Source: Oikopleura dioica (Eukaryota > Animalia > Chordata). From it: a DNA stretch of 64,000 bases. The stretch spans positions 2,232,001 to 2,296,000 of the forward strand of contig OU015566.1 in the NCBI GenBank assembly GCA_907165135.1, read 5' to 3'. The translations under genes and the position numbers were made by a program. Below the pieces are notes generated by a model, which saw only the letters and a program-made list of their open reading frames with translations, searched no databases and was not told where the DNA came from. Shown one piece after another: positions 8,170 to 54,040 of the stretch (position 1 is the stretch's first letter; every line of letters begins with the position of its first letter).

Positions 8170-8405
8170 AGGAAGTTGAATTTTGATGAAAAAAATCTTA
8201 AGGGTATAGCGATCGTTTATCAAAATTTCAAAAAAATCAAAATAGCGAAGAGAGACCCTTATTATATTTTATTTTTTTTTTCGATAATATTTAATTTATT
8301 CCAGAAAAATTGAATTTTGATGAAGAAAAACTTAAGGGTATAGCAAGGGTTCAACAAAATTTTTTAAGAATCAAATAAGCGAAGAGAGACCCTTATTATA
8401 TTTTA
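8170..8405. repeat. Two-unit tandem duplication (about 135 bp period), each unit holding a TTAAGGG...CCCTTA module
   Basis: TTGAATTTTGATGAA...CTTAAGGGTATAGC...AGCGAAGAGAGACCCTTATTATATTTT appears twice. Confidence 0.75.
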
Positions 8406-10082
8406 CTAAAAAAAGAGTTGAGAATAAAAGGATGATTTTTATAAGATAAATGATCATAAAATGGGTCAAGATTGGTAGCGGAATAAATAAGGGTGTCGTT
8501 GTGTTATCTCAAGGACTAGAAAATAATTGAGTAAGAAAATTATCGTGATAACGATAACCTCTTTCCCCTCACTCACATCATTTTACATTAAAATCTAGTT
8601 CAATCGGTACAATCGGATAAGTCTGCTTCTCGCAGCTTTTTTCTCGAAAGAAAAAAATAGAAAGAAGATTCTCGGAAAAGCGAAGAGAGTGAACACCTTG
8701 TTGCCACCGCAATCGGGTTGCCCGAACACCTCCGTGAAGCCACCTTATTCACTTCTTTCTTCTTTTTTTCTTCGCTAGAAGATTATTCAAGAAGTCCATT
8801 TTTTCGCGTTTGTCGAAATGGCTTCCTACTTACTAAGAGCTTGAGCGAGTGAGGCCTAAAAGGATCTCTCAATTATTCGCATTTGTCCGTTGATTGCTCA
8901 GCGGGGATTTTCGCGCCTCGGAGATTATCCAACCTCTGCTGAGGAGAATATAATTCAAGTTCTTTTATGTTCGTTCTATTTCAAGCTGTGTTGTTGAATT
9001 TATACCGCCGGGAATTATAACGTCCCCCGTTACAAGAGAGCTACGTGGAATTACAAAGAAGGCAAAGATCTTAAGGAAACCCCTCACAGCAATCGAAAAG
9101 ATTGAATTTTAACTTGACATTGAAGCAAAATTAATCAATAAATTTGAAAAAAATTGCACATCCTTATTTTTATATCAAGAAAGAAAATCTTAACCAAATT
9201 GTTATTTTTAAGAAAAACTTAAGGGTATCATAAGTTATGATTCATAACGTAAATAACAAAATTGTGATTTTGTGAAGTAATTGCGCCTTTTAACTTATTT
9301 GTTGAATATTTCAAAGTTTGAAATTCAAACTAAAAAAATCTTGAAATTGAAGCAACATTATTTAACTGACAATTTCTCAAAAAAAAAACTAAGGCGGATA
9401 CCCTTATTTTTTCTTAAAAAAACGTTTTCGCTTAAGGTTCTCAAAATGCCACAAGAGAATAATGACAATGTACTTTTCATCCCTTATTCTTGCCTGATCT
9501 TTACCCTTACCCTAATGTTCATCTAAGAATAAGGGTACCCCTTCTTAATTTCTAGAAATCTGACTCATTTTCCCCAACGAACCAAGGCGATCGCTAATCA
9601 CCTTGAATCCAAATCAGATTCCGCCATTTTTCGCATTTCCACATCCGAATTTCACTCATCATTTTTCATCGCTCGAGAATTTTTGAATATTTCTTCTCTC
9701 CAAAACAGGGTGTTTCGCGGAATATTCAACGACGACAAAATTCTTTGAAGGAAAATTTCGAAAATCGCCCTCTTGAGAGAGAAAAAAAAGATCGACCGTG
9801 AGCTTGGAGTGGTTTCTGGGATAAGGTGCTCCCGTGCGTAACCGGTTTGAGTGTGAGCGCTCGAGCTATCTTAAGGGGGTACGGTAATAGGTACTCACGT
9901 GGTACTCGTTTTATATGAATGCGGATGATTATACTGATAGACTCTTAATCCGGTTATCATACGATTTGAGTGTTTTTAGAGAAAAATTTTTTGAATTAAG
10001 GGTGTTTCTCTGCAAAAAATTAATTAAGTTTAAGGGGATACGCTCAATATTAATCGTTTATATCAAGATTTTTTTCTCGATG

Positions 10083-10176
10083 TAACATAGTGACCCCCTT
10101 ATTTTCAATTTTTTCTTTAAAAATTTGAATCTTTGGTTGTGAAAAAAATTAATTTGATAAGGGGATCTCTTTGTTA
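10083..10176. mobile_element. MITE of the TAACATAGTGA(T/C)(A/C)CCCTTATTTT family (degenerate copy)
   Basis: Left end TAACATAGTGACCCCCTTATTTT, right end ATAAGGGGATCTCTTTGTTA. The ends match 20632-20795, and a similar pair occurs at about 10811-10903. Confidence 0.55.
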
Positions 10177-11593
10177 GAAATCGATTCTGCGAAAATGATC
10201 CAAGTTAAAACTCGATTTTCAACAACCCGGTATAACCTTAACCCTTTCGTTTGATCAGGTTCAAATCCGTCTATTGAAATTTGCTTAAGGATCTCCCCTT
10301 TCTTGCTCCAAGTTCTAGAGCGCGCGAAATCGGCACCTGATAAGCTTCAAAAAGTCGATTTTGTCTTGTGCGATAGTTGACGGGGCAGCGCCTTAATTGA
10401 ACTTATCAGCAAAAAAACGAGAACTTCTTGAAGCTCCTTGATCAAGGGCTCCTCTTTTAATTAGAACTTCTATCAAAAAGAGCATTTTCAAACGTCAGGA
10501 AATTTTCGCTCCGCCCCGATCTGGCTTCTAAAATTTTTTTCCATCTGTGTTCGAAAATTTGAATTACAAATTTTCGCGAAATTTCTGAAATCTTCATTTT
10601 TTCGCCAAAAAATTACAATTCTCGACCGCGTTTGTTAAGACGCACCGTCAAGGTAGTGTCAGTTTTGCTTTTTCTTATCACCCACAAATTTTCCCAAAAC
10701 GTGCGAAAAAAACTGAGATTTTTAGAAAAAGAAAACAAATCATCAAAAAAGTTTTGATACAGTTAAGGGCGTTGATATCCTTAACACGATTTTTTGTCAA
10801 ATACTTTATTTAGTGACACCCTTAATTTTTTCCGTCAAAACGAAAATAGCTCTTTATGAAATTTCTGCGTAAAGAAGACTAAGAAAAATAAGGGTGTCAC
10901 TTCACTATTTTTCTGAGGGAAAAAACATAAAAATTCAAATGATTTAGGGCTAACGGCTAACCCTAACTCTTACCCTAACTAAGTGAAAATAAATTCGTCA
11001 AATAAAAACCTTCCAAAGATTAAGGGTGTACCCCTTTGTAAATTAAAATTCTAACAAAACCATGTTTATTGTAAAAATTCTCAAGAATCAGTCAATTTCC
11101 CGCGCCAGGAAGTGCTCTGAGAAAACACGACCGAAGAACCGTTCAAGCGCGGAATTCGGGAATTTCTAAAGATAAATTTTCAAATTCGAGGGATCTTCTT
11201 TCCGCACTGGAACAAGCTGGATAATCAAGCTTTGTTCAATGCGTTGTCTTTGGCACTCTAATGAGCGCTCGTTAGGCAACTTGCGACTTACATTTGCGCT
11301 AGTGTCTCATTGTCGAGGTAGATTTTCGCCGTAAGTGAGCGTTTTTAGAAGTATTTTACAGGCGGATATCCTTAATTTTGTACTGTTTTTACAACTGATA
11401 GCAGTTAACAACAAAAAAAAAACACTAACAATTGTGAATTGAGACAGTTCAATAAGGAGCAAACTGGTATTATGACTTTTTCTTTAATGATTAGATATGC
11501 CACGTGATACCCTTAATTTTCATCCCTGTTCCTATGTTTTTCTTTGTAAAAGTTGCCTGAAATTAAGGGACTCATCATGAAAAATGATAAATA

Positions 11594-12271
11594 CAGTGAA
11601 ACCCCAACTTAAGGCCGAGCAACTTAAGGCCACTTTTTTGAAAAATCCCCGAAATCTGTCATCCGAAAGAAATCCACTTTTTTTTCAATTTTTATTCACA
11701 GTGAGTAAATCGCAGATTTACTTTTTAATAAAAAAACTCGTTATTTTCGGCTGCTTCTTTGGCGATTTTGAAGTCGATGGCTTTTCAGCGTCGGCATCTT
11801 CTCTCACTTGAGCTTGTGGTACTTCTTCAACCTCCATCCGCGTCGGAATGTCTTTTCCATCATGTTTCTTTCGAATCAGCCCATTGATAATCTTCTTAAA
11901 TCAAATTGCATCACTCTTCTTCGGCGTCTTCACTAGAATCTCTGCATATCTTTTTATCTCGGCCAATTTCATGTGGATTCTCTTTTCTTCTTGCGACATG
12001 TTTGCAGCAAATTTATTTTTGAGAGAATGAAAAAATAACCGAAGGTTTGATTCAAATGGCGCATTCAGTTTTTACAATTCATACTTGGTTCGTGCGAGAA
12101 ATTTCTGATAAGGTCCTCCGCCTTTCATTTTTGATTCCCATGATTCAGTCCCTTAATCCAGAAATATAAAAATTTTAGCGTCATCAAACTTAGTTGTAGA
12201 ATCACCCAACTTAAGGCCACTTTTCAAATTAGCTGTCATCCAAAAAGTGGCCTTAAGTTGGGGTTTCACTG
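11594..12271. mobile_element. Non-autonomous pogo/Tigger-like (Tc1/mariner superfamily) element, 678 bp
   Basis: Perfect 23-bp TIR CAGTGAAACCCCAACTTAAGGCC, TA on both flanks (11592-93, 12272-73), and subterminal CAACTTAAGGCCACTTTT repeats near both ends. Confidence 0.9.
11718..11999 (-). pseudogene. Transposase C-terminal remnant ending in a PIP box, with one in-frame TGA
   Basis: MSQEEKRIHMKLAEIKRYAEILVKTPKKSDAI*FKKIINGLIRKKH...KSPKKQPKITSFFIKK*. QPKITSFF fits Q-x-x-I-x-x-F-F. The internal TGA is at 11903-11901. Confidence 0.7.
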
Positions 12272-12335
12272 TAGTCGTTCCCCCAGCTAAGGGTATCTAT
12301 ACCCTTAGATACCCTTAGGTTAGACAAATGCTTAA

Positions 12336-12358
12336 CCTAACCCTAACCCTAACCCTAA
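12336..12358. repeat. Interstitial telomere-like tract cctaa(CCCTAA)3
   Basis: Read directly. Degenerate CCCTAA/CCCTTA runs also occur near 9500-9515, 10943-10980 and 35964-36035. Confidence 0.7.
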
Positions 12359-14775
12359 TTTAGCCTTTTTATTTCCGAAAATTTCAGAAATTTCAGCGCT
12401 CATCAAATCCCATTACTCTTCTTCGTCCAGATTTTGTTCCGTTAATTTTCCCAGTTTTGATAATTTTCGAATTCCAAAAAAGTCAGCCGTGGAATCCGGC
12501 CGCATCAAACGCTCGGTTATTTTTTCGATTCGAAAATTCAATTAAATTTTTTCAACCTTTTTGACACCAGCGCGCTCAATTCATTCTAGAATTTTAACCG
12601 TCGCTCTGATTTTGGGTACAATAAGGGCGTCGTGCCTAGGGAGGCGGTGAGTTGTGGGGTTAAGGGAGAGTGATCACGTTAAGAAATTTGTTAATTAGAG
12701 AAGGGGGAAATTGAGGTTTCGGGTCGAAATGTATGTTATCAATTTAGATCGGGAACTCGTAAGGGGATTTTAAGGGTATCTCTCTCAATATTGATATTTC
12801 TATTCTTTTCTTCTATGACTTCCTTAATATTCTTTTGTTTTAAGAGGATTTATATACACAAAAATAATCTTTCTTTTTTGATTGTGATACCCTTATTTTC
12901 CCATCGCAAAAGATAGATGAAGGCAACAGCTAAATTCTTGCAAAAGAAAATCTTGATGTACTCCCTTAACCTTTTTACTTTTAACCTGTTTATTGAGAAA
13001 GCCATTTTCTGTCCCCGAAAAGCCTCAGGTACCCCCTTATTGCGCGAAATTCTTTCATAAAATTTGCAACTCACAAACGAGCCTATTTTTAATTAACTCA
13101 TATCAACAACTTCTTTTAGAAGCAAGCTTAGTTTCAAGGCAAAAAATGAGCGATTCTAGCGTTTTTTCGGAAACAAAAACTTGCGGTTCAAAATTTCCAG
13201 CAGTAGTAACTCCGAAATACCAAAAATTTGGAACATCATCCCCATCCCTCTAGGGAAAGTTTAATGACAAACATGAGGCGTCGGCGATAATCGCATCTCA
13301 AATGAACCGCTGACGCTAGAATCCAATTCCAGCTCGTGTTTCTTTTATCATTTCTGTTTTTTTATTCAAACTTTCCTTCGAAATTTTTTTGTCTTCTTGT
13401 TATTATTGTTAACCATCGCGGTCCATTATGGCCCCTGCCGTGTCTCTGAAATGAGCAATAGTGAAAAATCCCGCGGTGGCGGAGTGAAAACCGCACCTGT
13501 GAAATCTCGGAGACGGAAATGCACAGCTCAAGAACTAATGACTAGACTATAAGGAGATGTTTCACTTTCTTGTAAGGATAAATTTCTAAGAAAAGAATGT
13601 CTCATGCCGTTAGTTTCGAGAGGTTTTTTCCGAAAGATTTTGTCTTTTTCTTCTTTTCACTCAGAATTGTTCCAGCAGAGTGAGTCCTCCGGGCGTAAGA
13701 GAAAACGAAATCTGCTCGCTTGGTGTCGCTTTTTCGGGTTTAGTTTTCAGGGCAATCATCAGAATTGATCGGTATTTTAATGTTTATTCAAAATCCTTTT
13801 TCTTAATCCTTTTTTTGAATTTCAATGACGTTTTTATTTAAATTTTATAAATTTAATGCTAAACTGAAAGATTAACCTGTTTGTTTAGGTAAGAAGAAGA
13901 AATCAACACCTGCTTGCTAAGATTCGATGAATCATCAAGTTTCAGGGCATCCTTTCTCTTTCGCAAGTGTCAAGTTTATATTGAATATATGCAGAATGTC
14001 AGATAACAGTCCAACCAACTCAGACTGATTGAATCACATTTTGCGCAGACTGTCATTTCCGGCCGTCGAAGATTCTCAAAATTACTTCAGATTCTAGTTT
14101 TTCGTGAAAACGACTGTTTTTGCAGGGCAAACTACAGCATGTCTATGTATATATTTTTTTCAGGGTACTTAAATAAGCCACTCAAATGGGATCGGTAATC
14201 CGTAAGTTGATCCATCCGGCGCATTCTAGAATCCAGCAACGTTGAGTCTATTTTCGCGAAATTCGTCTTACTGTATTCCTGCTCCATTCTAAGTGGTCGT
14301 CGGCGAGATGGAGCGTTTTGAGCAATACAGTAAAGAAAAACAATAGGTTCTTCTTATCAGTGCTTTTTTAAAAATGCAAATTATCAGCTCTCAAAAGTGG
14401 CAAAAACGTCATCATTGCCACTTTTGCGTTTTTCCACGCTTTCTTCAAAAAGAAGAAAAGAATGAAATCGCGCCGCTGTGGCTCATTTCGCTGGCGCAAG
14501 TGCCTCTGTGCTTCTGTGGCCGGCTAATCGAAGCCACAAAGCTCACTTGCTGGAGCTCAGCGCGGTCGAAACACGCGGCTATTGTCGAAACGAATCCAAC
14601 ATTATCGCCAACACGCGTGGTCGGCTCAATGAAGATTTGGGGAACTTATCACAGAGTCAACGCGAATTTTACGCAGAATATTACTGAATACATTTTCCAC
14701 GAGAAATTTTACAAAATAACCAAAATGCCTTTTTTATCAAAAAAAACAAAAATCTACGGGAATCGACCTTTGTTA

Positions 14776-14966
14776 AAAACCTGAGTCAGGGTTATTAAAA
14801 ATATGAGAAGCCGCAAGGCGGCTTTTTTACAAACGAAGCCGCAAGGCGGCTTCGAAAAAACTCCTTTTTTAATGAATTTAAGGGTGTCAATAACAATTAC
14901 GCCAAGCGCTGTTGACGCCCTTAATATTCTAGCTATTTTCGCCCTTTAGACCCTGACTCAGGTTTT
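14776..14966. mobile_element. Composite MITE-like element: 17-bp inverted ends, two AAGCCGC hairpins and one TTAAGGG...CCCTTAA module
   Basis: AAAACCTGAGTCAGGGT (14776-14792) and ACCCTGACTCAGGTTTT (14950-14966). Internal GAAGCCGCAAGGCGGCTT occurs twice. No TSD seen. Confidence 0.75.
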
Positions 14967-16161
14967 CTGCACAGGTTGCCAAGCGACCTCGAACTTTTTG
15001 AATATAAAGGGTGTCACTATCTTAATCGCAATTTTTCTATGAAAATTCTCCGAAATTCTCAATTGATGATTCATTTTTTACTTTGATCACTTGATCATTG
15101 CATTATTGAAAGAAAAGACAAATTATCGATGATGCATTAAATCCGGCTTCAGAATTTAAGGAAGGACTGAACGGAACCATTCTAATCCCTATCAACGTTT
15201 TATTTGTTTCTAATCCTAGTACCTATAAACTTTAGTCGTAATCGTTTCTAAGCGGGCTCTCGTGACGACCCCGGATGATCCTCTCTTAATCGAGTCCAGA
15301 TTTCAACATGCAACGACTTATATAAGCATTTTTATCGCTTTATGTAGCAATATTTTCAGTTCCCGTCTCTTTTTGTGGTGCAAAGAAAACATGCTCTTCC
15401 GAGTCAAGAACCGCATTTTTCACTGAGCTTCCGGAATTTCACTGATGCAATTTTCGACTTAGAAAAATTCGTTTTCTCTGATGCAACGTAAAATTAATTA
15501 CCTATTTTTAAAAGGATTTATTTATTATTTATAAAAAGAAATTTTGAGTTTATTTTTTTAAAATAATTCTTTTTAATAATAAATTCTTTGATAAAGTATT
15601 TTTTCCATCTTGAATTTAATAATTTTTCTTTATAATTTATTTTTAAATAAAAATTTTTTAATTTTTGAAAAAGCCTATTTTTCAACTCATATCAAATTGC
15701 TATTTTTGTCGATTAAGGATGTCACTCAGATAAATTTTGAAAAAAAAAATCTTTAACATTTTAATATTTTTAAGGTTTCTGAAGGCTCTATTTCTTCATA
15801 AAAAGAATGGTTCTTTGCGGTTCGTCTAAACTTGTCGAAAAACGTTTTGGTCCTGAATTTAGCGCTTTGTACTTCCCCCTGCCGCTGTGTCCCCATGTTC
15901 GGATGAGTTTCCAAGTCTGAGAAGCAAAGTGCTCCTTTATTAAAATTTCTTCGGAAGGATTTTCAACAACCGCGCCGTAAATTCGCGAGACGTGAATTTC
16001 CCCACCGATTGCACGTGTTCACAGAATTTTTCCAAAAGCTGAAATTAAGGAATTTTCGCGATGACAGGAGGAGATTTTTTTGGAATTCAAGAGTCGAAAT
16101 TTTCTAGGAAAAGAGAATGCTAAAAGTTACTTGGATTCTAATGATACCTCAGCCACCAGAT

Positions 16162-16419
16162 TTAAGGGTGTCAACATCGATTCAAAAAGTTTGCGCAAAT
16201 CGTTGTTGACACCCTTAAGACACCTCGATTTAAGGGTGTCAACATGATTTAAAAATTAGCACAGATCGTTTTTGACATCCTTAAGGCACCCAGATTTAAG
16301 GGTGTCCAAATCGATTCAAAAAATTGGCCAAAATCGACGTTGAAACCCTTAAGACACCCCGATTTAAGGGTGTCCAAATCGATTGAAAAATTGGCTAAAA
16401 TCGATGTTGACACCCTTAA
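16162..16419. repeat. Tandem array of four 55-57 bp palindromic TTAAGGGTGTC...GACACCCTTAA units
   Basis: Units at 16162-16218, 16230-16284, 16296-16352 and 16364-16419, separated by 11-nt linkers GACACCTCGAT, GGCACCCAGAT, GACACCCCGAT. Solo units occur at 16962-17021 and about 14878-14925. Confidence 0.9.
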
Positions 16420-19215
16420 TTAACTATTAATTAACACTCCATTTCGTTTGTATTGATTTATAAATATCGTCGTGTTCACCCTTAAATCATTTGAATTTCC
16501 AGAAATTTCCATTTTGATTCATCTTTTTCAGTTTAAAAATGCAAGAATGCTCTTTGTTTACCATTTTAAACTTGCAAATTCTAACTCCCGCGCGAAAAAG
16601 GCGAATTCTGAAGAGGTGTTCCATAACGCGGAAGGACGGGACTTCTGGAGCTTGGAATCCGACCGGGACATTCCACTTGCGTAAGCGCGCTCCATAACGA
16701 ACGTTTTTCCGCGTCAACCCATCTAAACAAACCGACCAACTATTTTTCGAAACATTTCGTACTTCGTCTTCATTTGTAATCAACGGCACCTCCTTTTTCC
16801 CGAATCGAGGTTCATGCTGATGAAAATTTTTGCGCACCTTAAACTGCGAAGCCGCTTGCGGCTTCGGGTGTTAACTTGAAATAGCCGCGCTAGCGCGGCT
16901 AATATTTTCGTGAGAAAAAGCCGCGGGCTAACCTCTGATCCCTTGAGTGGCTTTTTTTAATTTAAGGGTGTCAACAACGATTTTCCCAATTTTACTTTTT
17001 GATCGCTGTTGACACCCTTAAGAAGCGAAAAACCATCAATTGAAAACCTTTTTTCTTTTGAAAAATCTTGATAATTTGAACTTTTTCTTCGAAATCCAAC
17101 GAAATTCGTCGAAAAAAAGCAAAACTTCTTACGTGTGATCCGTAACTCACTTCCGTCTTGACAGTTTTAAAAATCTCGTCGGTAAGGCGATCCTGACGTA
17201 AGGGCCCAGCCGCGGCTTCTTGGCGACCGAGAACAATTGTACAGAATGAGCTTGCGGCCACGGAATCCAGTTAGAGCCAGGGCATCGGTTACGTGCAAAC
17301 TTTCGCACTTTTGGTTAACTGAAGGTGAACGCCGGTTACTGTGCCTTTTTAGAACAAGCGCAATCTCGACTCAAAAAGAGCTTGATCAAAAGAGCGTCGA
17401 TTCTAGCGCCTCGAACTTAGAACTTATCGGAAAGCCCGGGGTTCCTTATCAACGAGGGCTTACAAGAGGGCAAAAATTCAAGTGCGAATTTGGGAAAATT
17501 TTTGATGAAAAAAATTTTTTGGAAAAATTTTTATGAAAAATTTTTTCCTGAAAATCGTTTTTTTATCATTGCCATTGTCATTTGCTCCTTGAGCTCATTA
17601 ATGCAAAAATGAATCTGAAAAAGGTGAAGAGTGGTCGTGAAGAATCGTGGAGGGCGGACACTAATGACCAGAATTTCATGCGAAGGTGGTTTTGAGTTGA
17701 ACCTTCCAGTCATTTAGAGCGTTATCCGGTGACACCGGACACATTAGCCCTCTTTGATTCCTACTCACGCTTCTTGGAGTGGCCCTGAAAGTTCGAAAAG
17801 ATCAAACAAAAATTTGCCGCGAAATTTTTAAATTTAATTTTTGAGCTGTAATTGAACTGCGTAATCCTGTTTTGACAGACGGAGTCGTGGTTCTAAACAA
17901 CTACGCAAGGCTACTACCCTCTGTATGGGATTAGCTAAGAGCCGTTATTATCACGCTATGGATCAATCAAATATGATTTGCCGATTTGGCCGTGAAATTT
18001 ATTTTTCAGATTTTCAGTGCGCTGACTCGATTTTAGAAACACACTTATTTCAAAAATAGAATTTTTTAAACTCTGACGAACTACAACAAATACGCGATTT
18101 TGATTGGCCGATTTCATTTTTGAAGGTTTTTTGATTGGCTGAAGCCCTAAAATAGGCAAAATCTAATTCAGCCAACAAGAAAGTTTAATTTAGCATTTCA
18201 ACCAATCAGAAAGCTCAAAATATATTATGCTCCAATCAAAAACCTGAAATGTTTTGAAAGTTCTTTCAGGAAAGATGACAATAAATCATCTTTTTCGTTG
18301 GATTTTCAAATTTGATTTTCGAGTCGAAAATTGATTGTTCAGATGTAGAAGGAAATACCAAGTCTCAGAAAGTCAAATATTATTTTCAATTTAGAAGACG
18401 TAATAGAAATAGGGCGTATCTGTCAGTCCGCTTCCGATTTTATAAGCTGCTGGACGCGGCGGCGGTTGGAAGGATACCGCGATCATTCGAGCACCTGCTT
18501 GATCGAATAGCCGCACGCCAGGCACGTTGCAATTTATTTGTCACTTTTGAGCTGCCAACTTTTGATTTTTTGGAAAAAAAAAGAAAAGATAATGCGAACC
18601 AAGAAGTTTTTTTGGTTTAGGAAAGTCAAAATTGGCTCATCAAAAGTTCAATTTTAGGCGTAAACGAAGAATCGAACTGTGTTTTTGAAAGACCAATAAG
18701 ATTGCTGTATTTGGCCTACTGGCAAATCAAAACCCTGATCCAGAAAATCATTTTTATTTTTCGATATTGCCTCAATTTTATGAGTCATATTTTATAAAAA
18801 AAATGAAAATCAAGCCTTTCCATTTTTTCCTCTATGATTTTTTTCTATCGGACAATCAAGTTCATAATCAATCCACGTTTTTGTGAAACGCAACAGACAA
18901 AATCGAAAGTGTTTGTTAAATAAAGGTGCACTTGTATATTCAACTCTGGCACCTTGTTTTGGCGATACCGCACGTTTTCGCTAACAGTTGATAGTGAATA
19001 ACTCAGTTACTGTCGAGCCCTATTTTATTTCTATCATTACAGTCGTTTTACAGTTTTCCAATGTATTCTAGCGCCAAGCAATCCATCGCTAAATCGATGC
19101 ATTCGATCGCCGCATGAGCTCGCATATCTTCGTTTTTATAAGCGGGAATTTTCGATCTCGCCTGAAAATGGAAAAATTAAGGGTGTCATGAGGAAAGTGC
19201 ATCATACGGTATGAT

Positions 19216-20517
19216 TAGGTAAACTTGATGAAAAATGAGCTCTTTTTTGAGCTTTCAATATAGAGAGTTTAATACATTTTTAGAATCCCCAGAAGCTGGG
19301 GATCATTTTGACTATTGATACTTGGGGGTTTGGTTCATGCCCTGAGGCGTTTTAGGCCTTCCAAAGTCCAAAAAATCGGGCAATCTCGGTGAAATGGCCA
19401 TAACTTTTGTTCTCCCCACTTTCTGATGATGCTCAGCATCTCAACTTGTAGCTGGGGTTCTGACGGTTCAGAATCTGTGTAGAAAACTACCGGACACCCC
19501 CCATTCTAGCGCTCCTAGAACCTCTAGAAGTTAGGGAAGTCCACCGAAAATCGGTACTTTTTTTACTAAAATATGGTAAAACAGATACAGACAAAACGGA
19601 CAATTCCGGAAGTTTTTTTTTCGGGAAAAATCGCCAAATCTCCGGAATTGTCCGAATTCGACTTGAAATTTGTTTGGGTCAGAAGTGCCTTTTTTAAGGG
19701 TGTCAACCAGAAAATGGACTTTTTTAGTGCTGCGCAAGGCTTTTTTGACTCTTCGCTGATTTCTTTTCAGAAAATTTTTCCTAATTATTTCGAAAAAGGT
19801 GGCCCTGTATAGAGAATAGGCCTCTAAGTTGAATTTTATGTCTTAACTTTCAGGAATTGTGCGCTTACAAAATTTTTGAAATTTCCCTCAAATCTCCGGA
19901 ATTGCCCGTTCCGGAATTGTCCGTTTTGTCTGTATATTTCTGTACAAAAACGATCTAGGAATAATAAAATCGTTTTTTTGACCTCAAAAATATATTTTGG
20001 GTCATTATCGAGTACTTCGGGTGAGTTTTTACGAAATTTTTTTTTGCACATAATTTGACTTGAGGTGACTTTCGATGCCTTGTAACTATATTTTGGACAT
20101 CAGAAAGCGGATTTTATCGAGTTTTGATCGATTTCGGACAAAAATTTACACCTTTTACAACATTTCAGTTGAAAAGTACCGATTTTCGGTGGACTTCCCT
20201 AACTTCTAGAGGTTCTAGGAGCGCTAGAATGGGGGGTGTCCGGTAGTTTTCTACACAGATTCTGAACCGTCAGAACCCCAGCTACAAGTTGAGATGCTGA
20301 GCATCATCAGAAAGTGGGGAGAACAAAAGTTATGGCCATTTCACCGAGATTGCCCGATTTTTTGGACTTTGGAAGGCCTAAAACGCCTCAGGGCATGAAC
20401 CAAACCCCCAAGTATCAATAGTCAAAATGATCCCCAGCTTCTGGGGATTCTAAAAATGTATTAAACTCTCTATATTGAAATCTAAAAAAAGAGCTCATAT
20501 TTCATCAAGTTTACCTA
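19216..20517. mobile_element. Non-autonomous DNA transposon with about 346-bp TIRs and an 8-bp TSD (hAT-like; P-like not excluded), 1302 bp
   Basis: Arms 19216-19561 and 20172-20517 are near-identical inverted repeats (3 mismatches seen, all near the ends). Termini TAGG...CCTA, with GGTATGAT duplicated at 19208-19215 and 20518-20525. A nested internal inverted repeat lies at about 19583-19612 and 19909-19935. No transposase. Confidence 0.92.
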
Positions 20518-20631
20518 GGTATGATTCATACCTCGCAAGCAAGAGTTCTTTCCAAGCATTTGAGCTCTGCCGCAGAATAAGTCGAAAGAGCTTCGCCAAA
20601 GACAAGATCGCTTGAAAAAAAAATTAAGAGC

Positions 20632-20795
20632 TAACATAGTGATACCCTTATTTTGAAAATCAGCAATAAAACCAAACCGATTATCGATTGAAAACAGACA
20701 AAAAATATTAAAATTTACTGTAAATCTGCTTGTAAAGCGCAAGAAGAAGGTCTTTTTTCAAGAACAGCTTTGAAAATAAGGGTATCTCTATGTTA
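20632..20795. mobile_element. MITE with 23-bp TIR (one mismatch)
   Basis: TAACATAGTGATACCCTTATTTT and AAAATAAGGGTATCTCTATGTTA. The terminal TA may be the TSD. Confidence 0.75.
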
Positions 20796-20897
20796 AATAT
20801 AAAGAAATTACCTCAAAACAGCAGATATAAAGAAAGAAACACAGAAAATCTTCATCTCAGTTAATTATTTTTTGTTTATTTTTCTGAATACAAATTG

Positions 20898-23800
20898 ATG
20901 CTGATTTATATATTTGCATGCATATTGCCTAATCTGGCAGGACATCATCTGTTTGTAAACCAATTCGTCTCAATTTTTAATCCCAATTTAAGGTCCTTAA
21001 CATCAATCGCGATTTTGACGGAGAACATCGTTTTGGCGCAAAGACCCGGCTTGACAGGCGGCTCTGGGTCGCGTGGAAGCCTTCTCGAGCAGTTGCGATA
21101 TTACGCTCGGGATGCTGAAGGTTTGGCTGGAAGAGCCTTGAGTCCGATTGAGATGGGAAGGTGCGCCAATCGTGAATTTGGAAGTCAATGCTGCGCTGGA
21201 TCCAACTGGAATTGTCAAGCTCCTGGGAGCAAATGCTCATGTGATCAAGTAAGCATTGTTCACTGAAGAAAATTTTAAGGGTGTAGCCTTCGATATTCAA
21301 AATACATTTGAGAGGCATTTTGAAGCTTTCTTATGTGAAATAAGGGTGTCACTTTCTTAATTCTGCGAAAAAATCATCAATAGAAACCCTTAAAAAGGAC
21401 ACCCTTAATGTTTTCAAGGAAATTCTTAGAGAAACCAAAGAAATTTTCGATAGAAAGGGTTCGATAGGACTTATCAGCCCAGAAATGAAAATAGAGCGGT
21501 AAATCTAGAACAGGGTTTATCCACTTCCGCATTTCGAGATTTGAAGCCGCAACTTAAATTTTGGCAATATGGTCATTTGATAACTAAGCGACCAAAATAA
21601 GGGTGTATCTAGGAAAACGGTTCTAACAAGAGTTCGCTCATAAGAACTCAGATTAAAACCTTAGATACTTAGATAGATAGGAAAAGTTTTTTCTGATTTT
21701 CTAGAAATATATTTTTTAACTGAAAACCATAAGCCAGTATAAATTCCCTCCATTATTTATTTTAATTGTATTGATTATCCGAAGTCAAGTTCAATAAAAC
21801 ACTTCAGTGAAACCAAATAACGAACACAAATTAACTTAGAATTGTGGAAAATAATATTATGCGAAACTGCACTATCACTTGATATCGGACAAAAATTCCC
21901 TTTCAGATGTGCCGAGAATTCAACGACTGCTGCCCTGACTATGAAGATCTTTGCCTCGAAGCAGAAGAACGACTGGTTTCTTGCGATCTTCGAAATGGAG
22001 ACATCAATGTATGGACCTTTTGCCTTTTCTCAATTTTTTATCCTGATTTTTAGAACAATCCGCCAATGGCTTTTGAGCCAGCGAAAATTCCCGACGATGC
22101 AAAACTAGCGCGCGCCTCTGGAGATCCTCATTATCATACTTACGACGGGCGAACGATCCATTACCAGGGCGGCTGCACGTACAAATTATCAGGTTCGCTA
22201 AATTAACCATTCAATCAACCAATCATCTTTCAACCCTTTATCATTCACTTTTAGGACTTTGCTCTTACGCCGCTACATCTGTTGAAGGAAATATTCTCAG
22301 CGAGTTCAACATCTATGCCAAAAATCGTCAATCTTTCAGGAGTGGATTAAAAATACAGTCAAATGACTGAAAGCTACTGTAGCCAACAATCTACGACTGG
22401 ATAATGAACCGCTCTGATCCACAGAATTGCGTAACTAACCGCAAGAAATGCATATTTCAAGCCCCGTTTATTCGTTTTTGGCAGATATGCTAAGTGTTCC
22501 CTACTTCCCCCCTTTTTTGATTAGAAAAGTAAATGAATCCAAAAACAAGAAATTCTGCCAGGAACGAGCCACGACCCATGGCTTGGGTTGAAACGATGAT
22601 CGTGGAAATGCCTGTGAAAACAGGCGACGTTGAGATTGGATCAAAATTCGTCACCGTTGGACAGGACCTTGCTATTCAGCTTGCTTCTGTTTGGACAAAT
22701 GGAACCTCTGGTGAGTTAAAAATCAACAACATTTTTGATGAAAATTATCAGCTTGTTGATAAGGGGGTTCACTTCTGGACTCGGCAATTCGTAAAAAAAC
22801 CTGAGTCAGGGTCCTTAAAAATCGGTTTTAAGGACGTCTACCCCGCTAACCCGCATTATCCAATAAGATGATGAAGAATTGCCAATTGCTCACTTTTTCA
22901 TATCCCTCGGAAAATCTTAAGCCGCTCTAGAGCAGCTTATCCTCTTTGCCCCAACAACACTTATCCCCATTTTCCTTATCCCCGTTGACCTTCCTTTGGT
23001 TCCGCTCAACTCGATAAATAAACACTTTTGTTCAGAAATCCGCTCATTGGACGAAGCCGAACTTCCATTTGACATTAATGATGATGCTGGAGACCGAGTC
23101 GGTCATATTTATAAAAAGGGTAACTATGTTAGGGTTCAAGTTGGTATCGATGGATTGACGGCTGGATTCAACGGCAAGCAGAATATGAAGATCAACTTGC
23201 CTTGCCAGGTTTGCAAATACTTTTGACTCAATTTTTGAATCTGATTTTCAACAGTATATGGGCAATGTCTGCGGCCTTATGGGCAATGCCGACGCTGATC
23301 CCTCAAATGACGACCGTATGCCATCCGACATCAGCGCCGAAGACGACAATATCCTCGGTAAATCAACAACTGTTCTTTTCCATTTTCTAATTTTCCTCCA
23401 GGAGAATCTTGGGTTGCCACTAACTTGCCAGTAATTATCGGCGACGGAATCAACGAATGCTCCGATTCTCTTCCAGAAGGTGCACCAAGAGCACCAGAAG
23501 TCTGTGATGCCAACAATTTGAGAGAGGCTGCTACTCATTGCACTGCTATTCTGGACGCTGAAGGTATCATTTTTCTTCAAAAAACATTTCTTCAAAACAT
23601 TTTTCAGGTCCATTCGGAGGTTGCTTGGTTCACGATGTCGCTGGTAGCTTCTTTGAAGATTGCGTCTACGATTTGTGCCTCTACTTCGAAAACGACCTCG
23701 ATATCGAGTAAGCGCCCTCTTTCTTTTTCCAACTCCTCAATCCCCTTCTTTCAGACAAGCCAAATGCGACGTCCTTGAAGCGTATGCAAACGAATGCCGA

Positions 23801-45470: not shown

Positions 45471-46034
45471 ATGAGTTTTAAAATTGATATCAAGAAAGAA
45501 AAACGCTCCCTGAACATCGCTCAATTCGGAGCGGCGAGGCAAAAAGCTAAGAATCAAGGAGAGAAGCTTGATATTCAAAATATCGCGAAGAAAACAAGCG
45601 TTCATGCCACTTTTACGGGGCAAGGAAACTCGCTGAAAGAAGAAACAACCGGAAGAATTGAAGAAGAAAGAAAAATTGACGAAGTTGAAGTCAAAATTGA
45701 TCGGGTAATTAGCGGCCTTCTGGGCCTGAGAGAATCTAGACTCTGGATTCTAGAGGTACTATAATATAAAAATTCTATATTTCGAAAGAAAATTTTCATC
45801 GAAATTAAGAGTTTGCCAACTACAAAGCTTCGATTCCGATTTCCTTCTGAACAACGAGAGCGAATCTTCAACACCAACACATCAATTTCCTCCCTTATAG
45901 ACTTTTGCTCTGGGATTCTTGGATATGAAGCCGCAGTTTTTGAAGGTTTTCCGCCGAAAGAATTGGGAAGAAGTGAAGACAGTTTGGAGAAATTGAAGAT
46001 TTTGAATACTGTTCTAAGCGTGAAAAAGAAATAA
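45471..46034 (+). CDS. Small UBX-domain protein with an SHP-box-like motif (p97/VCP cofactor-like)
   Basis: FTGQGNSL (F-x-G-x-G-x-x-L), then after one GT-AG intron SLPTTKLRFRFPSEQRERIFNTNTSISSLIDFC...FEGFPPKEL...LKILNTVL*. Confidence 0.75.
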
Positions 46035-46093: not shown

Positions 46094-49000
46094 TCAAGCC
46101 ATTAGTTTACGATGAAGTTTGATTGTGTAAGCTTGTGGAAGAAGATGCCAAATTCCTGGTCTCATATTGAAATTCTCGTTGACCAATGTCAAAAACTCTT
46201 TGTTTTCCCCGTTATAAACATAACTTTGACCATTGAAAGATTCCATCATATTTTCTTCAGCGTAATACTCGCGATCAAGAGGAATTCTTATTTGAGAAGG
46301 AGAAAAACCCGTTTTTTCATCGTCGATCAAATTATTTTCGATAATATATTCGCCATTCTCGATCCGGTCAACTGTCATCTGATGATAAATGACACTAGAG
46401 TTAACTAAAGTATCCTCTCCGATCGAAGAAAGGTACGCTCCAGTAACAGTAAGTGGACGAGTGAAGATATATTTTTGATGAAGAAGAACTAAAATAATTT
46501 GAAAGATCTTTTAGCCTTATTTAAACAGTATAAATTATACCTCTTTCATAGTCAAAATTTGCAGAAATATGAAATTTGACTAACTCCCATCCGACGTCAT
46601 TTAAGAAGGTTTTATACTTGAGTCTTTGAAGTAGGCACTCAATACCATTTGTTTGATAGTCTTGCTCTTCTTTTTTTGGATTGAGGTTCAATCCAGCGAG
46701 GCTTCGGGGATACACAGAAGTTAAAGATTTTTCAAATTATTTGAGATTTATCTTATGTCAATTTTTTTATCTTAACTGGAAAAAACCAGTAAAGGGTACT
46801 ACCTTCGATTTCCAAAATGGGCTTTATCTTTTAAACTGATAAAAGTGGGTATAAAAAATAAATTCCTCAGAAAATCTTTTCTAACTTTTATGTTGATCCT
46901 AGTTTGAAATTCTTGATGGTTTCCGAGATGTAGCCTCTCGAAGTTTTTTCGAAAAAAATTTTTGGTCGTCGATTTTTTCGAATAAGGGCTTTTTTGAAAG
47001 CGTAGAGCAAGGAGATCATTTTTGTAGGCTTAGAAAGATGGTCAGAAGTACCCGTCAACAATTTTCGAAAAATTTTTTTTCGGAATTTGAGAATTTTGAC
47101 CCCGGAAATAGATTCTTCTTTGTAAAGAAAATATCCAACAAGAAACAGTAGACTTTGGCCTATAGTAAATTTATTTTCGCGGTTTTTCTTTTCTATCTCA
47201 AAATCAAGTTTGAAAATTGGCTTTTTTGCCCTCTGGTGTCTTAACTCAAAAAAATTAAGGTGTTGCCTCTAGAGACAATTCCTTTAAAAAAAATAACAAA
47301 TTTGCTAAGGAAAAATTTTAAAAGAGAAAAAAAATCTTGAACTTCTTGAATAAACCACCATCGTCAAAACAACGAAGATATTTTCGAAAGTAACGCGTTC
47401 TTCATCTAATTTCGATCGATCATAATTCAAGTCATGAATCATTGCCCAACGAATAAGAATACAGACGGAAATAGGAACGCAAAGATTTGTGTCCTTTTGA
47501 TCGATGATATTAGTTGTCAGATTCTCAAAATCTGGATTTGAATGTCTTGTTAATCTTTGTTTCAGATTAGCCATCGCGATCGATTTTGTGAAATTTGGAT
47601 CGCCAACACAAATATTTTCGGGAGATATTTGATTGCTATTGTAGCTTCTCAAAAAAATATTGTCCTTCAAACTCATTATTTGATCGTCGGTTGGGTCTTC
47701 CTTATTTGACAGCCACTCAGCATTCAATGCCTCAAAATTCTAATTTTGAATATGCATTTAGCTTACTTTGAGTTCTCGTTTGACCCTATTTTCCAGAATT
47801 TCAGCTTTAACATCTGGTATTGGAGTATAAAGAAGATTCCAAGCAGTTGACCAGTTGCAAAGAATGAAAACATAAATATTTGACCCAGTTATGTAGATCT
47901 CACCAGAAAGCTGAGAGATTTGGGAAAAACCTGCAGATCCCGCGCCTTAAATAGTCGTCAATGACCTTATTTTGTTCATTCAACTATTTAACAATGTCCA
48001 GAAATCAGATCTTGAGGCTTTTAAGGACCCCCACCCCCGGTCAACACTTTTCGAAAATTTTTTTTGCGGACTTTCAAAAATTTGACCCCGGAAATGGATT
48101 CTACGAGTCAAAAAACGATTTTGAGGCTGCATCTTTTGAGGCTCTATCTCGACTTTAACACCCTCAAAATCGCCTTTGAAAATTGGACTTTTTGACGAAG
48201 AATGAGGAAAAACTCCTAAATTTACTAAAATTAAAAATTTTTATTGGTCAAAAAGGGGCCCATAGAAGTTTTTATGATGAATTGAACTTTCAGGCACACT
48301 TAGAAGCCCAAAGATGGCTGTTTTGAAATTGACCTCTCTTGGATCATTACTTACGTAAAAGCTCTTCATCTTTGAACATGCTACCCCTCCTTGTATATCC
48401 CATTTCCCGGAAGCTTTTTCTTCCCGACGATTCAATTACAACTCCGAAGTCTGTCACTTTTGGTTGCCAATATTTGAGAAGAATGTTTTCTGGCTTTTTG
48501 TCAAAATGTCTTATACCAATACGTTCCAAATGAGAAAAGCCCTGTTTGACGCGACATGCAATCTTTTGTCTTTGCTCCCGATGTAAGTTGTTTATCTTAA
48601 GATACCGTCTCAAATTATACGTGTCACAGCGCTCCATAATTGTGATCCACCCAAGACAATCTTCTTTTCCCCAGTCGTTTTCCGAAAATATTTCAATATT
48701 GCAATAATTTCTGATCACATGTTGGTGATAAGGAATTATACGTCGACTTGTATCGTTAACAAGAAGCCGCTCAGGTGGAGCTTTGTAATCTTTAAAATTG
48801 CCTTTTAGTACATTATGATTGATAATATCGACCTTTTGAAAGATGAATATCAAATCCAAGCTCTTGATTTATGGAGGTAAAGAGCGCTGAATCAAAAACC
48901 TGAATACGAACAGCGGTTTCAAGATCTCCAAATTTTTCTTTAAAGACGATGGCTTCTCCTCCGACTATGACGAGATAATATCTGTGAAAAATTAACAAGT

Positions 49001-49626
49001 TATTTTTCTAATGATAAAAATTCATTCTGGTTAAGACTATCGACTCTCTAGATCAAATCCCAAACTGAGATTAGAGCATCTTCAGCAAAATGATCGATTA
49101 CCCATTCACCAGTTTCTTCCCTCAATTTCGATCGTTTGATTATTTTATTATTCAAATTTGGATATTCACGCAGAATATTCTTTTGAAAAAAGGTTGCCCG
49201 AAATGTTCCCTCAATCATCTTTCCATCCCTTTTGTATTTTGTTCTTCCCTTTCCATCTTCAAAAACAACTTCCTCCCAACGAGCATCATATGTATTTGGA
49301 AAGTCCATTCTCTCGATTGACAAAATAAGTCGGTCCAAATCATTTCTGCTAGTTGTTCTCTTTAATTTCTTTTTGAAGACGTCAAGCCATTTCAGAACAA
49401 CATATTCGGTAAGCTCTCTTGGATGATCGATAGTGTCATCATAAACTCTTAGCCGAGGAGGATGAGCTCTTTCAGCGAAATCATCAGAACTGTCTGAGGA
49501 TTGTCTTGTGAATATTGTTTTCAAACCTCTGTCCAAATTTTCTAAAATTGAAGGTTCAGAGTCCTCACTATCTCGTCTTCCCCTTCTCCCACCAATGTCG
49601 AAAATAGAAAAAGCCTCGCGAAACAT
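46094..49626 (-). CDS. Divergent protein kinase fused to a papain-like cysteine protease domain; possibly pseudogenised
   Basis: Kinase: IVGGEAIVF, TAVRI, WITIMERC, HFDKKPENILL, KVTDFG, RAGSAGF. C-terminus: IIDQKDTNLCVPIS ... YHQMTVDRIENGEYIIENN. Internal introns are in phase, but there is an apparent frameshift near 49050 and an unresolved junction between 47330 and 46720. Confidence 0.75.
47051..48107. repeat. Two copies of an about 70-bp dispersed repeat inside the kinase-protease gene
   Basis: CCCGTCAACAATTTTCGAAAAATTTT...TTTGACCCCGGAAATAGATTCT (about 47051-47117) versus CCCGGTCAACACTTTTCGAAAATTTT...TTTGACCCCGGAAATGGATTCT (about 48037-48103). Confidence 0.7.
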
Positions 49627-51334: not shown

Positions 51335-54040
51335 ATGGCAAATTTCTCGCTTGAAGCGCTTGATGAGAGAATCAAGAAGTTAGAAGAGCTGCATGAAATT
51401 CAAGAAAGTAATGACAACAGTATCAATCAGGTAAATTAAAAGATTCAGAACTTCTTCTTTGTCCCAGGGCTTCATCAAAATGATGGGGAGTTGTTGAGGT
51501 CTCTAGTAAAAATATTACGAAATTCTAAAATAAGGTTGAATCGCGAGAGCCTCAAGCGGCATCAAGCACCACCACAGCTTGCATTACTCTTTTAAAAAAA
51601 GAGCTGACGCTTGAATTCTTGAGTGCTTTTTTGCAACATGGCAAATTTTTCTATAGAAGCATTAGAGGAAAGAATCAAAGCTCTGGAAGACTTGAAGGGT
51701 ATTCAAAAGAGTAATGATAACAGCCTCAATCAGGTATCGAATAAAATTTTTTTAAAACACCAAAAAGAGGTCTTTTATTAATAATTTTACCTTTTGAACC
51801 TGATAAATGATTTATAATTATCAAAAATTCTTGAGAAAAATAGCAAAAAATGAAATTTGTTTCATAAAAAATTGAATTTTTTATGATTAAAGAGAGATAA
51901 TCGATCATCATCGTCAAAAATTGAGTTATTACTTGATATACCCTTAATTCTTTCGTCCATGAACCCCTTAAAATCGAACCACGCAGTCTGCTGCATGATA
52001 TTAGTCTGCAGTTCTGAAAAATGTCCTCAGATAGGCTCGGGGTACCCTTAGGCGCTATCAAGGAGCGATGAACCCTCTAACCTCTTACTTTCAATTTTAG
52101 TTTTTTCTTATCGTCATGGGTGTTTTGGTGATGTTTATGCAGTCTGGATTCGCGTTTTTGGAAGCTGGATCGGTTCGACAAAAGAATGTGGTCAACATTT
52201 TGATTAAAAATATCCTTGATTGCTGTAAGTCAGAGCTCAATAAGTGACGCCCTTAGCAAGTTTCTAGTGAAGGGAGCGATCATCTGGTGGGCCTGTGGAT
52301 TTGCTTTTGCATATGGAGATCTAGACATCCCCAGCGCTGCGAACAAGTTTATCGGACACAAGTATTTCTTCACTCAAGGATGGGAAGACTTTGAAAACTT
52401 CCACGCGAACTGGTTCTTCCAGTATGTTTTTGCCGCCACTGCTGCGACGATTGTTTCTGGCGCCGTTGCCGAGAGAACTCAGGAAAAGGAACTCACAGCA
52501 GGAAGAATTAAAGACTCAAATCGAAAACAACTCGGCTGCTCTTTTTCGTAATTCATTGAGTTCTTTGTCATTATTGAAAAACAAAGTAGTCAAAAGAATT
52601 TGCTCTGGGAAGATTTTTCCGGGAATATCACCTCATTTTTAGGGCTTTTATCGTTCAAAAACTCTGAAAAGTTGATGATTCCTTGTGAAGTTCGGCTCTT
52701 ACGTCATCTACTCCACCTTCATCACCGGCTTCGTCTACCCCGTCGTCGCTCACTGGGCCTGGTCGGGCACAGGTTGGCTAACTTCCAGCCCCATCCCTTC
52801 TTTCCGTCGAAAGGTTTTCGACTGCGAATCATTGAGCTACAAGTTCGACGATGATGACGTCATCGCTTTTGCGGACTTCGCCGGCTCTGCGGTCGTTCAT
52901 TGCACTGGTGGAATCGCTGCTCTAATGGGCGCGTTTTTTCTTGGACCAAGAGTTGGAAAATACGAGCGAGTCGGGGGAAAACGAGTTTCAAAGCAACTTG
53001 CGGGGCATTCGGTTCCTTTGGCTGCTCTTGGAGGATTCATTCTTTTCGTCGGCTTCATGGCTTTCAATGGAGGATCGGCGCTGGCGATCGTCTCAAGTGG
53101 AGAAATTGTCGACAATGGGCAGGCAGTTGCGTCGGCAATTATGAACACGCTTGTTGGTGGCGCTTCTGGCGCGGTTTTTTGCTTAGGATTGAGCATTCTT
53201 GTTCCTGTCATCAAAGGTACATGTTTCAAAAACACATCGATCATCATTTTGTTGATGCTTTATGTCACGCTAATTTCAGGCGAGGATCATTACTGGTCTC
53301 TCCTGACAACAATCAACGGCGGTCTTGGCGGTATGGCCTCCCTCTGTGCTGGTTGTAATGACATGACAACTGGAGCCGCTTTCGGAATCGGTGGAATCGC
53401 TGGAATGACCGTTTACTGGGTCGGCAATGCTTTGGACCGAATCGGAATCGACGATCCTATCGATGCTTTTGCTGTTCACTTTGGCGGGGGAGTTTGTGGA
53501 ATTCTCCTCGCGCCGCTTTTTGCTAATTTTGGAATTGCAAGACAACCGAGTTGTGGGGTCCAGAAAGATGCTTTTGGAGAAGTTTGGGCTGCTTGCAATG
53601 TTGCTGAGCCGGTCGACATGGGTAAATCTGAGTACAAAATTAAACCAGTGAACAATCTTTGATTCTAGAGCTGTTTGAGTGCGATTACTATGCGTACAAA
53701 CAATTTGCATGGAATCTTATTGGCTTGATCGTGATCACTCTTTGGTCGGGCTCCCTTGTTGGCGGCGTTTTTGCCGTTTTGAAAGCAACCAAGCTTTTGA
53801 GGTGAGTCTTCCTTGTTTTCAATTTATCCAATTGCTCGTAGAGTTGAGGAAGAAATCGAAATCCGCGGCCTTGATATCAAGAAACACGGAGAGCCGGGTT
53901 ACCCTCTCGCTGCACAGGGCCATGGTTGGGAAGAAAGAAGCAGTTCTGAGGAAAAAACGAAAACTTATCAGAAAAATACTGTCATCCCCGAACCAACTCA
54001 TGTTCAACTGGAGCCGGCTCGGTTTGGGCCAGATAACTAG
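51335..54040 (+). CDS. Amt: Ammonium transporter (Amt family) with two alternative 32-codon first exons
   Basis: FMQSGFAFLEAGSVRQKN, WFFQYVFAATAATIVSGAVAER, YPVVAHWAW, DFAGSAVVH, FNGGS, DDPIDAFAVH, GLDIKKHGE; twin His present. First exons 51335-51430 and 51638-51733. GA-AG intron 52483-52690. Confidence 0.95.

Follow-up and report, generated by a model that had tools for sequence, protein, structure and literature searches.

A gene family of Oikopleura dioica predicted to join an atypical kinase and a divergent papain-fold peptidase in one chain, with a copy interrupted by transposon-derived repeats

Here we describe a gene of the chordate Oikopleura dioica, located on the minus strand of a 64,000-nucleotide stretch of contig OU015566.1 (assembly GCA_907165135.1, positions 2,232,001 to 2,296,000; hereafter the window, in whose numbering all positions are given), together with the family to which it belongs. 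The explanation that we favor, at a probability of about 0.6, is that the gene is a member of a kinase plus papain-fold peptidase family and that this copy has recently been disabled or compromised by an insert. The product of the family would be one cytosolic chain, composed of an N-terminal domain, an atypical non-RD kinase domain and a divergent peptidase domain of clan CA. In this copy, about 625 base pairs (bp) of nested transposon-derived repeats would have landed in the exon for the helical lobe of the peptidase, and the copy would most likely yield either a product cut short beyond the Cys lobe or an mRNA that depends on an unusual GC-AG intron of 604 nucleotides (nt).

The kinase and papain-protease folds are among the best known in enzymes. 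A search of the literature library found no paper on this family, nor any described protein that unites a kinase and a papain-fold protease in one chain, and the family is apparently undescribed.

Searching the genome with the separate parts of the gene returned 118 matches for the N-terminal domain (N-domain), 134 for the kinase, 118 for the segment with the conserved Cys and 113 for the segment with the conserved His. At more than 100 loci these parts lie on one strand in the constant order N-domain, kinase, Cys segment, His segment, and all 118 N-domain matches are upstream of a kinase. Several paralogues carry the parts in single open reading frames (ORFs). In L034, one ORF of 635 residues covers the N-domain and the kinase and continues into the segment with the Q-x5-C motif; an uninterrupted ORF of L033 has the same span; L047 holds the kinase C-lobe and the entire C-terminal domain (C-domain) in one ORF; and the entire C-domain lies within one ORF in each of L035, L043 and L044. 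Among annotated proteins, CBY13560.1 of the Bergen strain (664 residues, with a Pfam kinase domain) is collinear with the L034 ORF, with gaps where the latter reads through short introns, and CBY31701.1 (450 residues) contains both kinase and C-domain parts. Because of the single paralogue ORFs, the annotated 664-residue protein and the constant order at more than 100 loci, the comparison supports the view that the kinase and the Cys/His domain form one chain in the family. Such a fusion had been proposed in a preliminary description of this DNA, drawn up from its letters without database searches, which left for checking whether the Cys and His segments are linked to the kinase among paralogues; they follow it on the same strand at more than 100 loci.

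The family loci are clustered on several scaffolds, and the copies have diverged to 40-60% identity. Stop codons are present in about one in ten of the genomic matches (introns may account for some of them), and catalytic residues have been lost in certain members: the Cys is replaced by Ser in L033 (2771-4672, plus strand) and CBY13560.1, and the His by Asp in L002 (930-1274, minus strand). With Cys or His lost in some members, the family includes probable non-catalytic or dead copies. The earlier expectation of a large family with damaged copies is thus borne out by 113-134 genomic matches per part, some with stops. When a profile of four full domains was run against a library of 1.84 billion representatives, 201 scored at E ≤ 0.001, mostly fragments of exon size; nine of the 20 representatives sampled were in named clusters, all of them from O. 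dioica. As far as named sequences go, the family would therefore comprise more than 100 genes and be restricted to this species. The N-terminal domain matched no Pfam family, gave no lead in the PDB and had no match in the protein atlas.

Three further sequences bear on the variety of the family. At L045 (1046-1900, minus strand), a single ORF of 284 residues covers the His lobe of one copy, a short linker rich in Pro and then the N-domain and Gly loop of the tandem copy that follows, and from this ORF crossing two tandem copies it appears that some family members may be double units. The O. dioica protein CBY07058.1, of 1493 residues, falls in the same 90% cluster as a 664-residue member. Additionally, in CAG5114306.1 (OKI2018_I69.chr2.g8366) a DnaJ domain is found together with part of the family C-domain, which points either to a gene model joined in error or to a relative that has undergone domain shuffling.

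The kinase domain is recognized by Pfam Pkinase (PF00069) from exon 3 alone, at 41.4 bits against a cut-off of 31.7 (E 1.4e-10), and in paralogue L034 at 44.9 bits; the remainder of the gene outside exon 3 matched no Pfam family. In place of the canonical GxGxxG loop the family has (S/V)GGEAIV, and across paralogue loci this loop always reads GGEA(I/V/L)(I/V). The position of the VAIK Lys, within the beta-3 motif AVR, is occupied by Arg in 15 of 15 family variants. Most of 24 catalytic-loop variants read H-x-D-x-K-P-x-N, with the Pro replaced in two, and the residue preceding the catalytic Asp is F, H, C, L, Q, E or Y, never R. DFG, sometimes DFS, is retained in the paralogue variants, and this copy has TDFG. 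Judged by these residues, the family kinase is of the non-RD type and lacks the canonical Lys, yet keeps the metal-binding and catalytic-base residues. The initial account of a degenerate Gly loop, Arg at the VAIK Lys and a non-RD catalytic loop, given for this one copy, is true across the family variants. Since the best PDB sequence matches of the domain are weak (CDK9, DAPK1, JNK and KSR, E about 1e-5), no kinase group can be assigned.

Like the non-RD kinases and pseudokinases, among them KSR and the IRAK/receptor-like kinases, the family has no Arg before the catalytic Asp in any copy examined, and KSR1/2 are among its weak PDB matches. Unlike them, it has Arg for the VAIK Lys and a GGEAIV Gly loop, and it keeps the catalytic Asp, the Asn and DFG. 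Non-RD kinases such as IRAK/receptor-like are linked to innate immunity; for the present family an immune link is an analogy only.

In this copy, reading three frames across every junction gave seven open exon segments (Table 1), all of them free of internal stops. Every peptide quoted in the preliminary description was located on the minus strand; the exon for the kinase C-lobe had been overlooked, and its motif W..AW.L...P is found again in paralogues. The best-case joined model has 783 codons and no stop, with introns of 58, 31, 409, 27, 604 and 52 nt, of which five are GT-AG and one is GC-AG. This model served as a check on frame, while the searches and folds took single exons or uninterrupted paralogue ORFs. 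The median intron in the O. dioica OKI2018_I69 assembly is 49 bp, and 11% of introns are non-GT/AG (PMC8008620). The introns of 31 and 27 nt are well under this median, and the splicing of both is putative. The view that transposon-derived non-canonical introns are typical of Oikopleura was set aside, as massive non-canonical splicing is reported for Fritillaria borealis; for O. dioica, the 11% figure is the one relied on.

Two places in this copy had been suspected as lesions. The first is near 49050, where the frame shifts by one between the N-domain exon, whose ORF has 192 residues, and the Gly-loop exon. At least seven paralogues continue directly from ...IS into GGEAIV at this point; here there are about 100 additional bases, with stops (among them the one at 49048-49050). 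The stretch of about 100 nt is single-copy in the genome, which rules it out as a repeat. Joining the GT at 49065 to the strong CACAG acceptor (48982) gives an out-of-frame product, and this was the source of the "+1 frameshift" first reported. The same GT with the acceptor CATTAG (49008) delimits an in-frame intron of 58 nt, with about 14 residues added that end in LVIVGGEAIV; enumeration of the in-frame splice pairs also gave GA-AG (49054-48982) and GG-AG (49061-48965). Most simply, then, the frame change would be a copy-specific intron and not damage: the shift by one is there, and a canonical GT-AG intron (49065-49008) would remove it.

The second place is the insert in the peptidase exon. 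Family-like sequence in exon 5 stops at VVYSRS, from which the open frame continues to a stop codon at 47305-47307, and about 625 bp separate VVYSRS from VYPRS, where the family sequence resumes; the 600-bp insert of the earlier account is therefore real. In about 20 paralogues the corresponding ...LTM(V/I)(V/I)YPRSLAG... is unbroken. The first part of the insert is a 258-bp element (46793-47050) with copies at 94, 82, 80 and 79% identity on other scaffolds. Directly next to it lies an element of about 180 bp (47051-47230) with a highly repeated 66-bp core: with the query taken as a whole, a repeat search gave 227 first-look candidates, and some 30 of the 40 scored matches were to this core, at 91-95% identity. 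The core occurs at 47051-47116 and again at 48037-48102, that is, in the insert and in intron 3, in the same orientation. The insert thus consists of nested transposon-derived repeats within an exon that is continuous in paralogues. No terminal inverted repeats were found for it. A long duplicated exon tail or target-site duplication flanking the insert was considered and rejected, as the likeness between the DNA sequences is not significant: p is 0.28 in comparison with shuffled sequences, 68% of the control windows taken from introns score no lower, and at most a 6-nt GTKTAT is repeated. The duplicated VY(S/P)RS junction reported at first is accordingly within chance, and what interrupts the exon is repeat DNA. 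We also noted that the 258-bp repeat begins AAGGGTAC, with TA before it, and so resembles the (A/T)TAAGGGT(G/A)TC motif of window positions 8170-21610; the two may be one repeat family.

No splice restores the family sequence at the insert. Ahead of the conserved LAG there is a single AG acceptor, at 46703-46702; as the sole usable one for exon 6, it makes 46702 the last base of the intron and sets the start of that exon at 46701. Several GA-AG and GG-AG donors are in frame with it, each removing part or all of the conserved MVVYPRS, and with the downstream acceptors at 46670-46661 the in-frame pairs lose LAGLNLNPK as well. The GC-AG pair 47305-46702, enclosing 604 nt, keeps VVYSRS and adds 12 residues.

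Apart from the insert, this copy is well preserved, with all of the key kinase and peptidase residues of the family in place. It keeps 33 of 34 family-conserved C-domain positions, exceeding 73% of the other family rows; this count takes Pro104 from the downstream VYPRS, and the GC-AG model, which uses VVYSRS, has 32 of 34. Because of these positions and the lack of a stop in any exon segment, the copy does not look to have been decaying for long, and the earlier suggestion of a decaying member stands for the family, which has damaged copies, and not for long decay of this one. The insertion may be recent, as the best repeat copy is 94% identical. Intact exons are no proof of function of this copy.

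On present evidence, this copy is probably disabled, or its chain cut off after the Cys lobe, and its rescue by unusual splicing is somewhat less probable than that. The strongest rival to our explanation takes the rescue at face value: the copy would be fully functional, with the 604-nt GC-AG intron (47305-46702) and the 58-nt GT-AG intron removed to give 783 residues with two small insertions relative to paralogues. The model is open throughout with its five GT-AG introns and one GC-AG intron, the donor GCAAAT is near the usual GC-donor pattern, non-GT/AG introns are common enough in the assembly (about 11%; PMC8008620), and the 33 conserved positions are in place. Against this, some in-frame bridge is expected by chance when four donor classes are allowed, and the bridge found swaps the near-invariant Pro of Y-P-R-S for Ser and puts 12 mostly hydrophobic residues in the helical lobe. 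Furthermore, with the median at 49 nt, an intron of 604 nt would be very long; the insertion, whose best repeat copy is 94% identical, may be too recent for decay to be visible; and the word search, within its length limits, found no near-identical protein in the databases that spans either junction. We consider full function a serious, if somewhat doubtful, alternative.

The assignment of the C-domain to the papain fold comes from structure prediction. A first AlphaFold model, made from 33 paralogue rows, reached a predicted local distance difference test (pLDDT) score of 60, gave no usable match and was replaced. For the second, about 100 diverse relatives from the library search were added to give 124 rows, with the uninterrupted L047 domain of 280 residues as the query. 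The resulting model has a pLDDT of 81.4, mostly above 90 in the core, and a predicted template-modeling (pTM) score of 0.76. When it was compared with 48,161 representative chains by VIA-align, all 50 of the top 50 rows were clan CA, each covering residues from about 48 to 280. The best were xylellain (Z 9.5, with a root-mean-square deviation (rmsd) of 3.0 over 153 aligned residues), Der p 1 (9.3) and Der f 1 (9.2), followed by calotropain (8.9), cathepsin B (8.9 and 8.5) and caricain (8.5), with C39, staphopain, IdeS, UfSP, ATG4 and ZUFSP lower down. The Foldseek list, below significance, was likewise dominated by clan-CA peptidases, and by protein-language-model features the neighbors of the domain in the protein atlas are C39-like and Mac-1 peptidase clusters; a Foldseek search of viral models gave no match at E ≤ 0.001.

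The residues expected of such a fold are conserved in the family and well placed in the model. Among 64-77 diverse members, the Gln is kept in 59 of 64 (92%), the Cys in 62 of 64 (97%, the other two having Ser), the His in 69 of 76 (91%) and the Asn at H+16 in 66 of 74 (89%), with the papain-like spacings Q-x5-C and H-x15-N. In this copy the Q-x5-C lies within DQKDTNLCVPIS (47467-47502). In the L047 model, the conserved Cys63 begins a long helix (63-78), the conserved His is within a strand (180-192), and His and Asn are on neighboring strands, a layout like that of papain. The motifs L-C-V-P, Y-P-R-S-x-x-G, H-Q-M-x-x-D and W-Y-L-x-P are conserved as well, with the P-R-S and Gly of exon 6 kept at about 63 of 71. 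On the strength of the uniform clan-CA list and the full-domain coverage, the model supports a very divergent papain fold of clan CA in which Gln, Cys, His and Asn are conserved. The structure prediction that had been named as a check thus yields a two-lobe papain fold with the Cys at the N-terminus of the central helix. Of the papain-like Cys-His-Asn claim itself, fold and residue conservation hold up and the assembled triad is putative, with the qualification that the fold is predicted from a paralogue model and that sequence methods are silent.

That silence is among several points that count against our explanation. The C-domain exons had no match in Pfam at E ≤ 1, and the C-domain profile had none among PDB sequences at E up to 10. 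Peptidase_C1 (PF00112), run over the whole genome, found about ten genuine cathepsin-type genes and zero family loci, so that by sequence profile the family is not a member of peptidase family C1. An hhalign comparison with the genome's own C1 peptidases was not significant (probability 0.1%); the only alignment that it gave, at that non-significant 0.1%, places the family Q-x5-C on the C1 columns for the oxyanion Gln and catalytic Cys. As for structure, the fold was predicted for paralogue L047 and not for the interrupted copy, the best Z of 9.5 is only modestly over the noise level of 7-8 stated for VIA-align, and Foldseek gave no match in the PDB at E ≤ 0.001. Replacing the VAIK Lys by Arg classically leaves a kinase dead, and because of this change the family kinase may lack phosphate transfer. 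Also, the 783-codon best-case model is open, so this copy may still function, and any biological role assigned to the family is speculation.

Within clan CA, the best whole-domain structural matches are to papain family C1 (xylellain, Der p 1/Der f 1, cathepsin B, caricain), with Z of 8.5-9.5 over about 150 residues at rmsd 3.0-3.8. The family resembles C1 in having its Gln six residues ahead of the Cys at the start of the central helix, and its His in the beta lobe with the Asn 16 residues on. It differs in showing no detectable sequence similarity to C1, in lacking a signal peptide, a pro-region, the Cys-rich disulfide pattern and the N-S-W motif after the Asn, in carrying the four motifs listed above as its own invariants, and in being fused behind a kinase, presumably in the cytosol. 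Other clan-CA families (C39, staphopain C47, IdeS/Mac-1 C66, UfSP C78, ATG4 C54 and ZUFSP) share the fold at Z 6.5-7.7, and the C39-like and Mac-1 clusters are the language-model neighbors already mentioned; their scores are below those of C1, and they have no sequence motifs in common with the family. To our knowledge, no other clan-CA family is known as a fusion with a kinase domain.

A second rival accepts the papain fold and denies the protease, making the C-domain some other thiol enzyme (a deubiquitinase-like isopeptidase, a deamidase or an acyl- or transpeptidase) or a non-catalytic binding module. The structural matches do extend to UfSP, ATG4, ZUFSP, C39, phytochelatin synthase and a CD lyase; the chain lacks both signal peptide and pro-region and is joined to a kinase; and Ser has taken the place of the Cys in L033 and CBY13560.1, as Asp has that of the His in L002. 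We nevertheless find this reading unlikely, given that the four residues are 89-97% conserved at papain-like spacing and that the top-scoring matches are C1 endopeptidases; an isopeptidase, moreover, would itself count as a peptidase, broadly defined. Finally, the idea that kinase and peptidase are separate adjacent genes, their fusion an artefact of reading past a gene boundary, draws on the fact that no single ORF unites the two in this copy, and is hardly credible in view of the uninterrupted ORFs of L034, L033 and L047, the presence of both parts in CBY13560.1 and CBY31701.1, and the mere 27-45 nt that lie between the parts here.

Table 1. Layout of the kinase-peptidase gene and positions of its motifs in the window
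Feature	Position	Strand	Description
Gene as a whole	49626-46094	minus	Seven open exon segments, from three-frame reading across every junction
Exon 1	49066-49626	minus	Start codon, Ser/Asp/Arg-rich leader, N-terminal domain HPRELTEY...DLDRLILSIER...
Intron 1	49008-49065	minus	58 nt, canonical GT-AG; specific to this copy (putative)
Exon 2	48833-49007	minus	Kinase N-lobe: degenerate Gly loop VGGEAIV; TAVR (Arg replaces VAIK Lys)
Intron 2	48832-48802	minus	31 nt, GT-AG, ahead of exon 3
Exon 3	48355-48801	minus	Kinase core: non-RD catalytic loop HFDKKPEN and DFG
Intron 3	47946-48354	minus	409 nt, GTAAGT...AG; enlarged by an interspersed-repeat copy of about 165 bp at 48037-48200
Exon 4	47767-47945	minus	Kinase C-lobe segment GSAGFS...CNWSTAWNLLYTP, from frame reading
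Intron 4	after exon 4	minus	Very short GT-AG: 27 or 36 nt, or 45 nt with the upstream donor
Exon 5	47341-47739	minus	Predicted papain-fold helical lobe; DQKDTNLCVPIS with oxyanion Gln and nucleophile Cys
Insert	46716-47340	not assigned	About 625 bp, nested interspersed repeats
Exon 6	46541-46715	minus	(VY)PRSLAGLNLNP... to ...NFDYER, remainder of the helical lobe
Intron 6	46540-46489	minus	52 nt, GT-AG, ahead of exon 7
Exon 7	46094-46488	minus	Predicted beta lobe: HQMTVDRIEN...IIENN (His; Asn at H+16), WHLLPQAY, stop codon
VGGEAIV	48945-48965	minus	
TAVRIQ	48900-48917	minus	
HFDKKPEN	48485-48508	minus	
TDFGVV	48437-48454	minus	
DQKDTNLCVPIS	47467-47502	minus	
VVYSRS	47341-47358	minus	
VYPRSLAG	46692-46715	minus	
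HQMTVDRIENGEYIIENN	46331-46384	minus	

Two neighbors of the gene were noted. A convergent gene (45813-46034, plus strand) ends in a UBX-like domain (Pfam UBX at 20.0 bits, cut-off 21), its stop codon 60 bp away from that of the kinase-peptidase gene, and upstream of the latter, at 52216-53662 on the plus strand, there are ORFs that resemble an ammonium transporter (Amt/Rh type) by look.

The N-terminus has no signal peptide, and the chain opens with the kinase-linked domain. In intact members, the peptidase would cleave peptide or isopeptide bonds in the cytosol, and the kinase-like module would regulate it or capture its substrate, through nucleotide binding or phosphorylation. That the family is large, clustered and fast-diverging, with turnover, suggests a role in genetic conflict or defence. 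The one-chain sensor/effector of the preliminary description, a kinase- or nucleotide-gated cytosolic protease, is likewise a conjecture. A far bolder proposal, which we think quite improbable, is that O. dioica, a chordate that lost much of the conventional immune gene set, might have evolved a large set of one-chain switches, each a papain-fold protease under the control of a nucleotide-binding kinase-like module, that these might form a lineage-specific system of intracellular surveillance or conflict, and that the peptidase might be the founder of a new family in clan CA.

With more than 100 copies, a restriction (as far as named sequences go) to one fast-evolving chordate and catalytic residues conserved in both halves, the family suggests an unexplored coupling of phosphorylation or nucleotide sensing to proteolysis, and would add a peptidase family that sequence methods fail to recognize. 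The copy described here would provide an example of how the insertion of mobile elements removes members of such a family, or tests their tolerance of unusual splicing.

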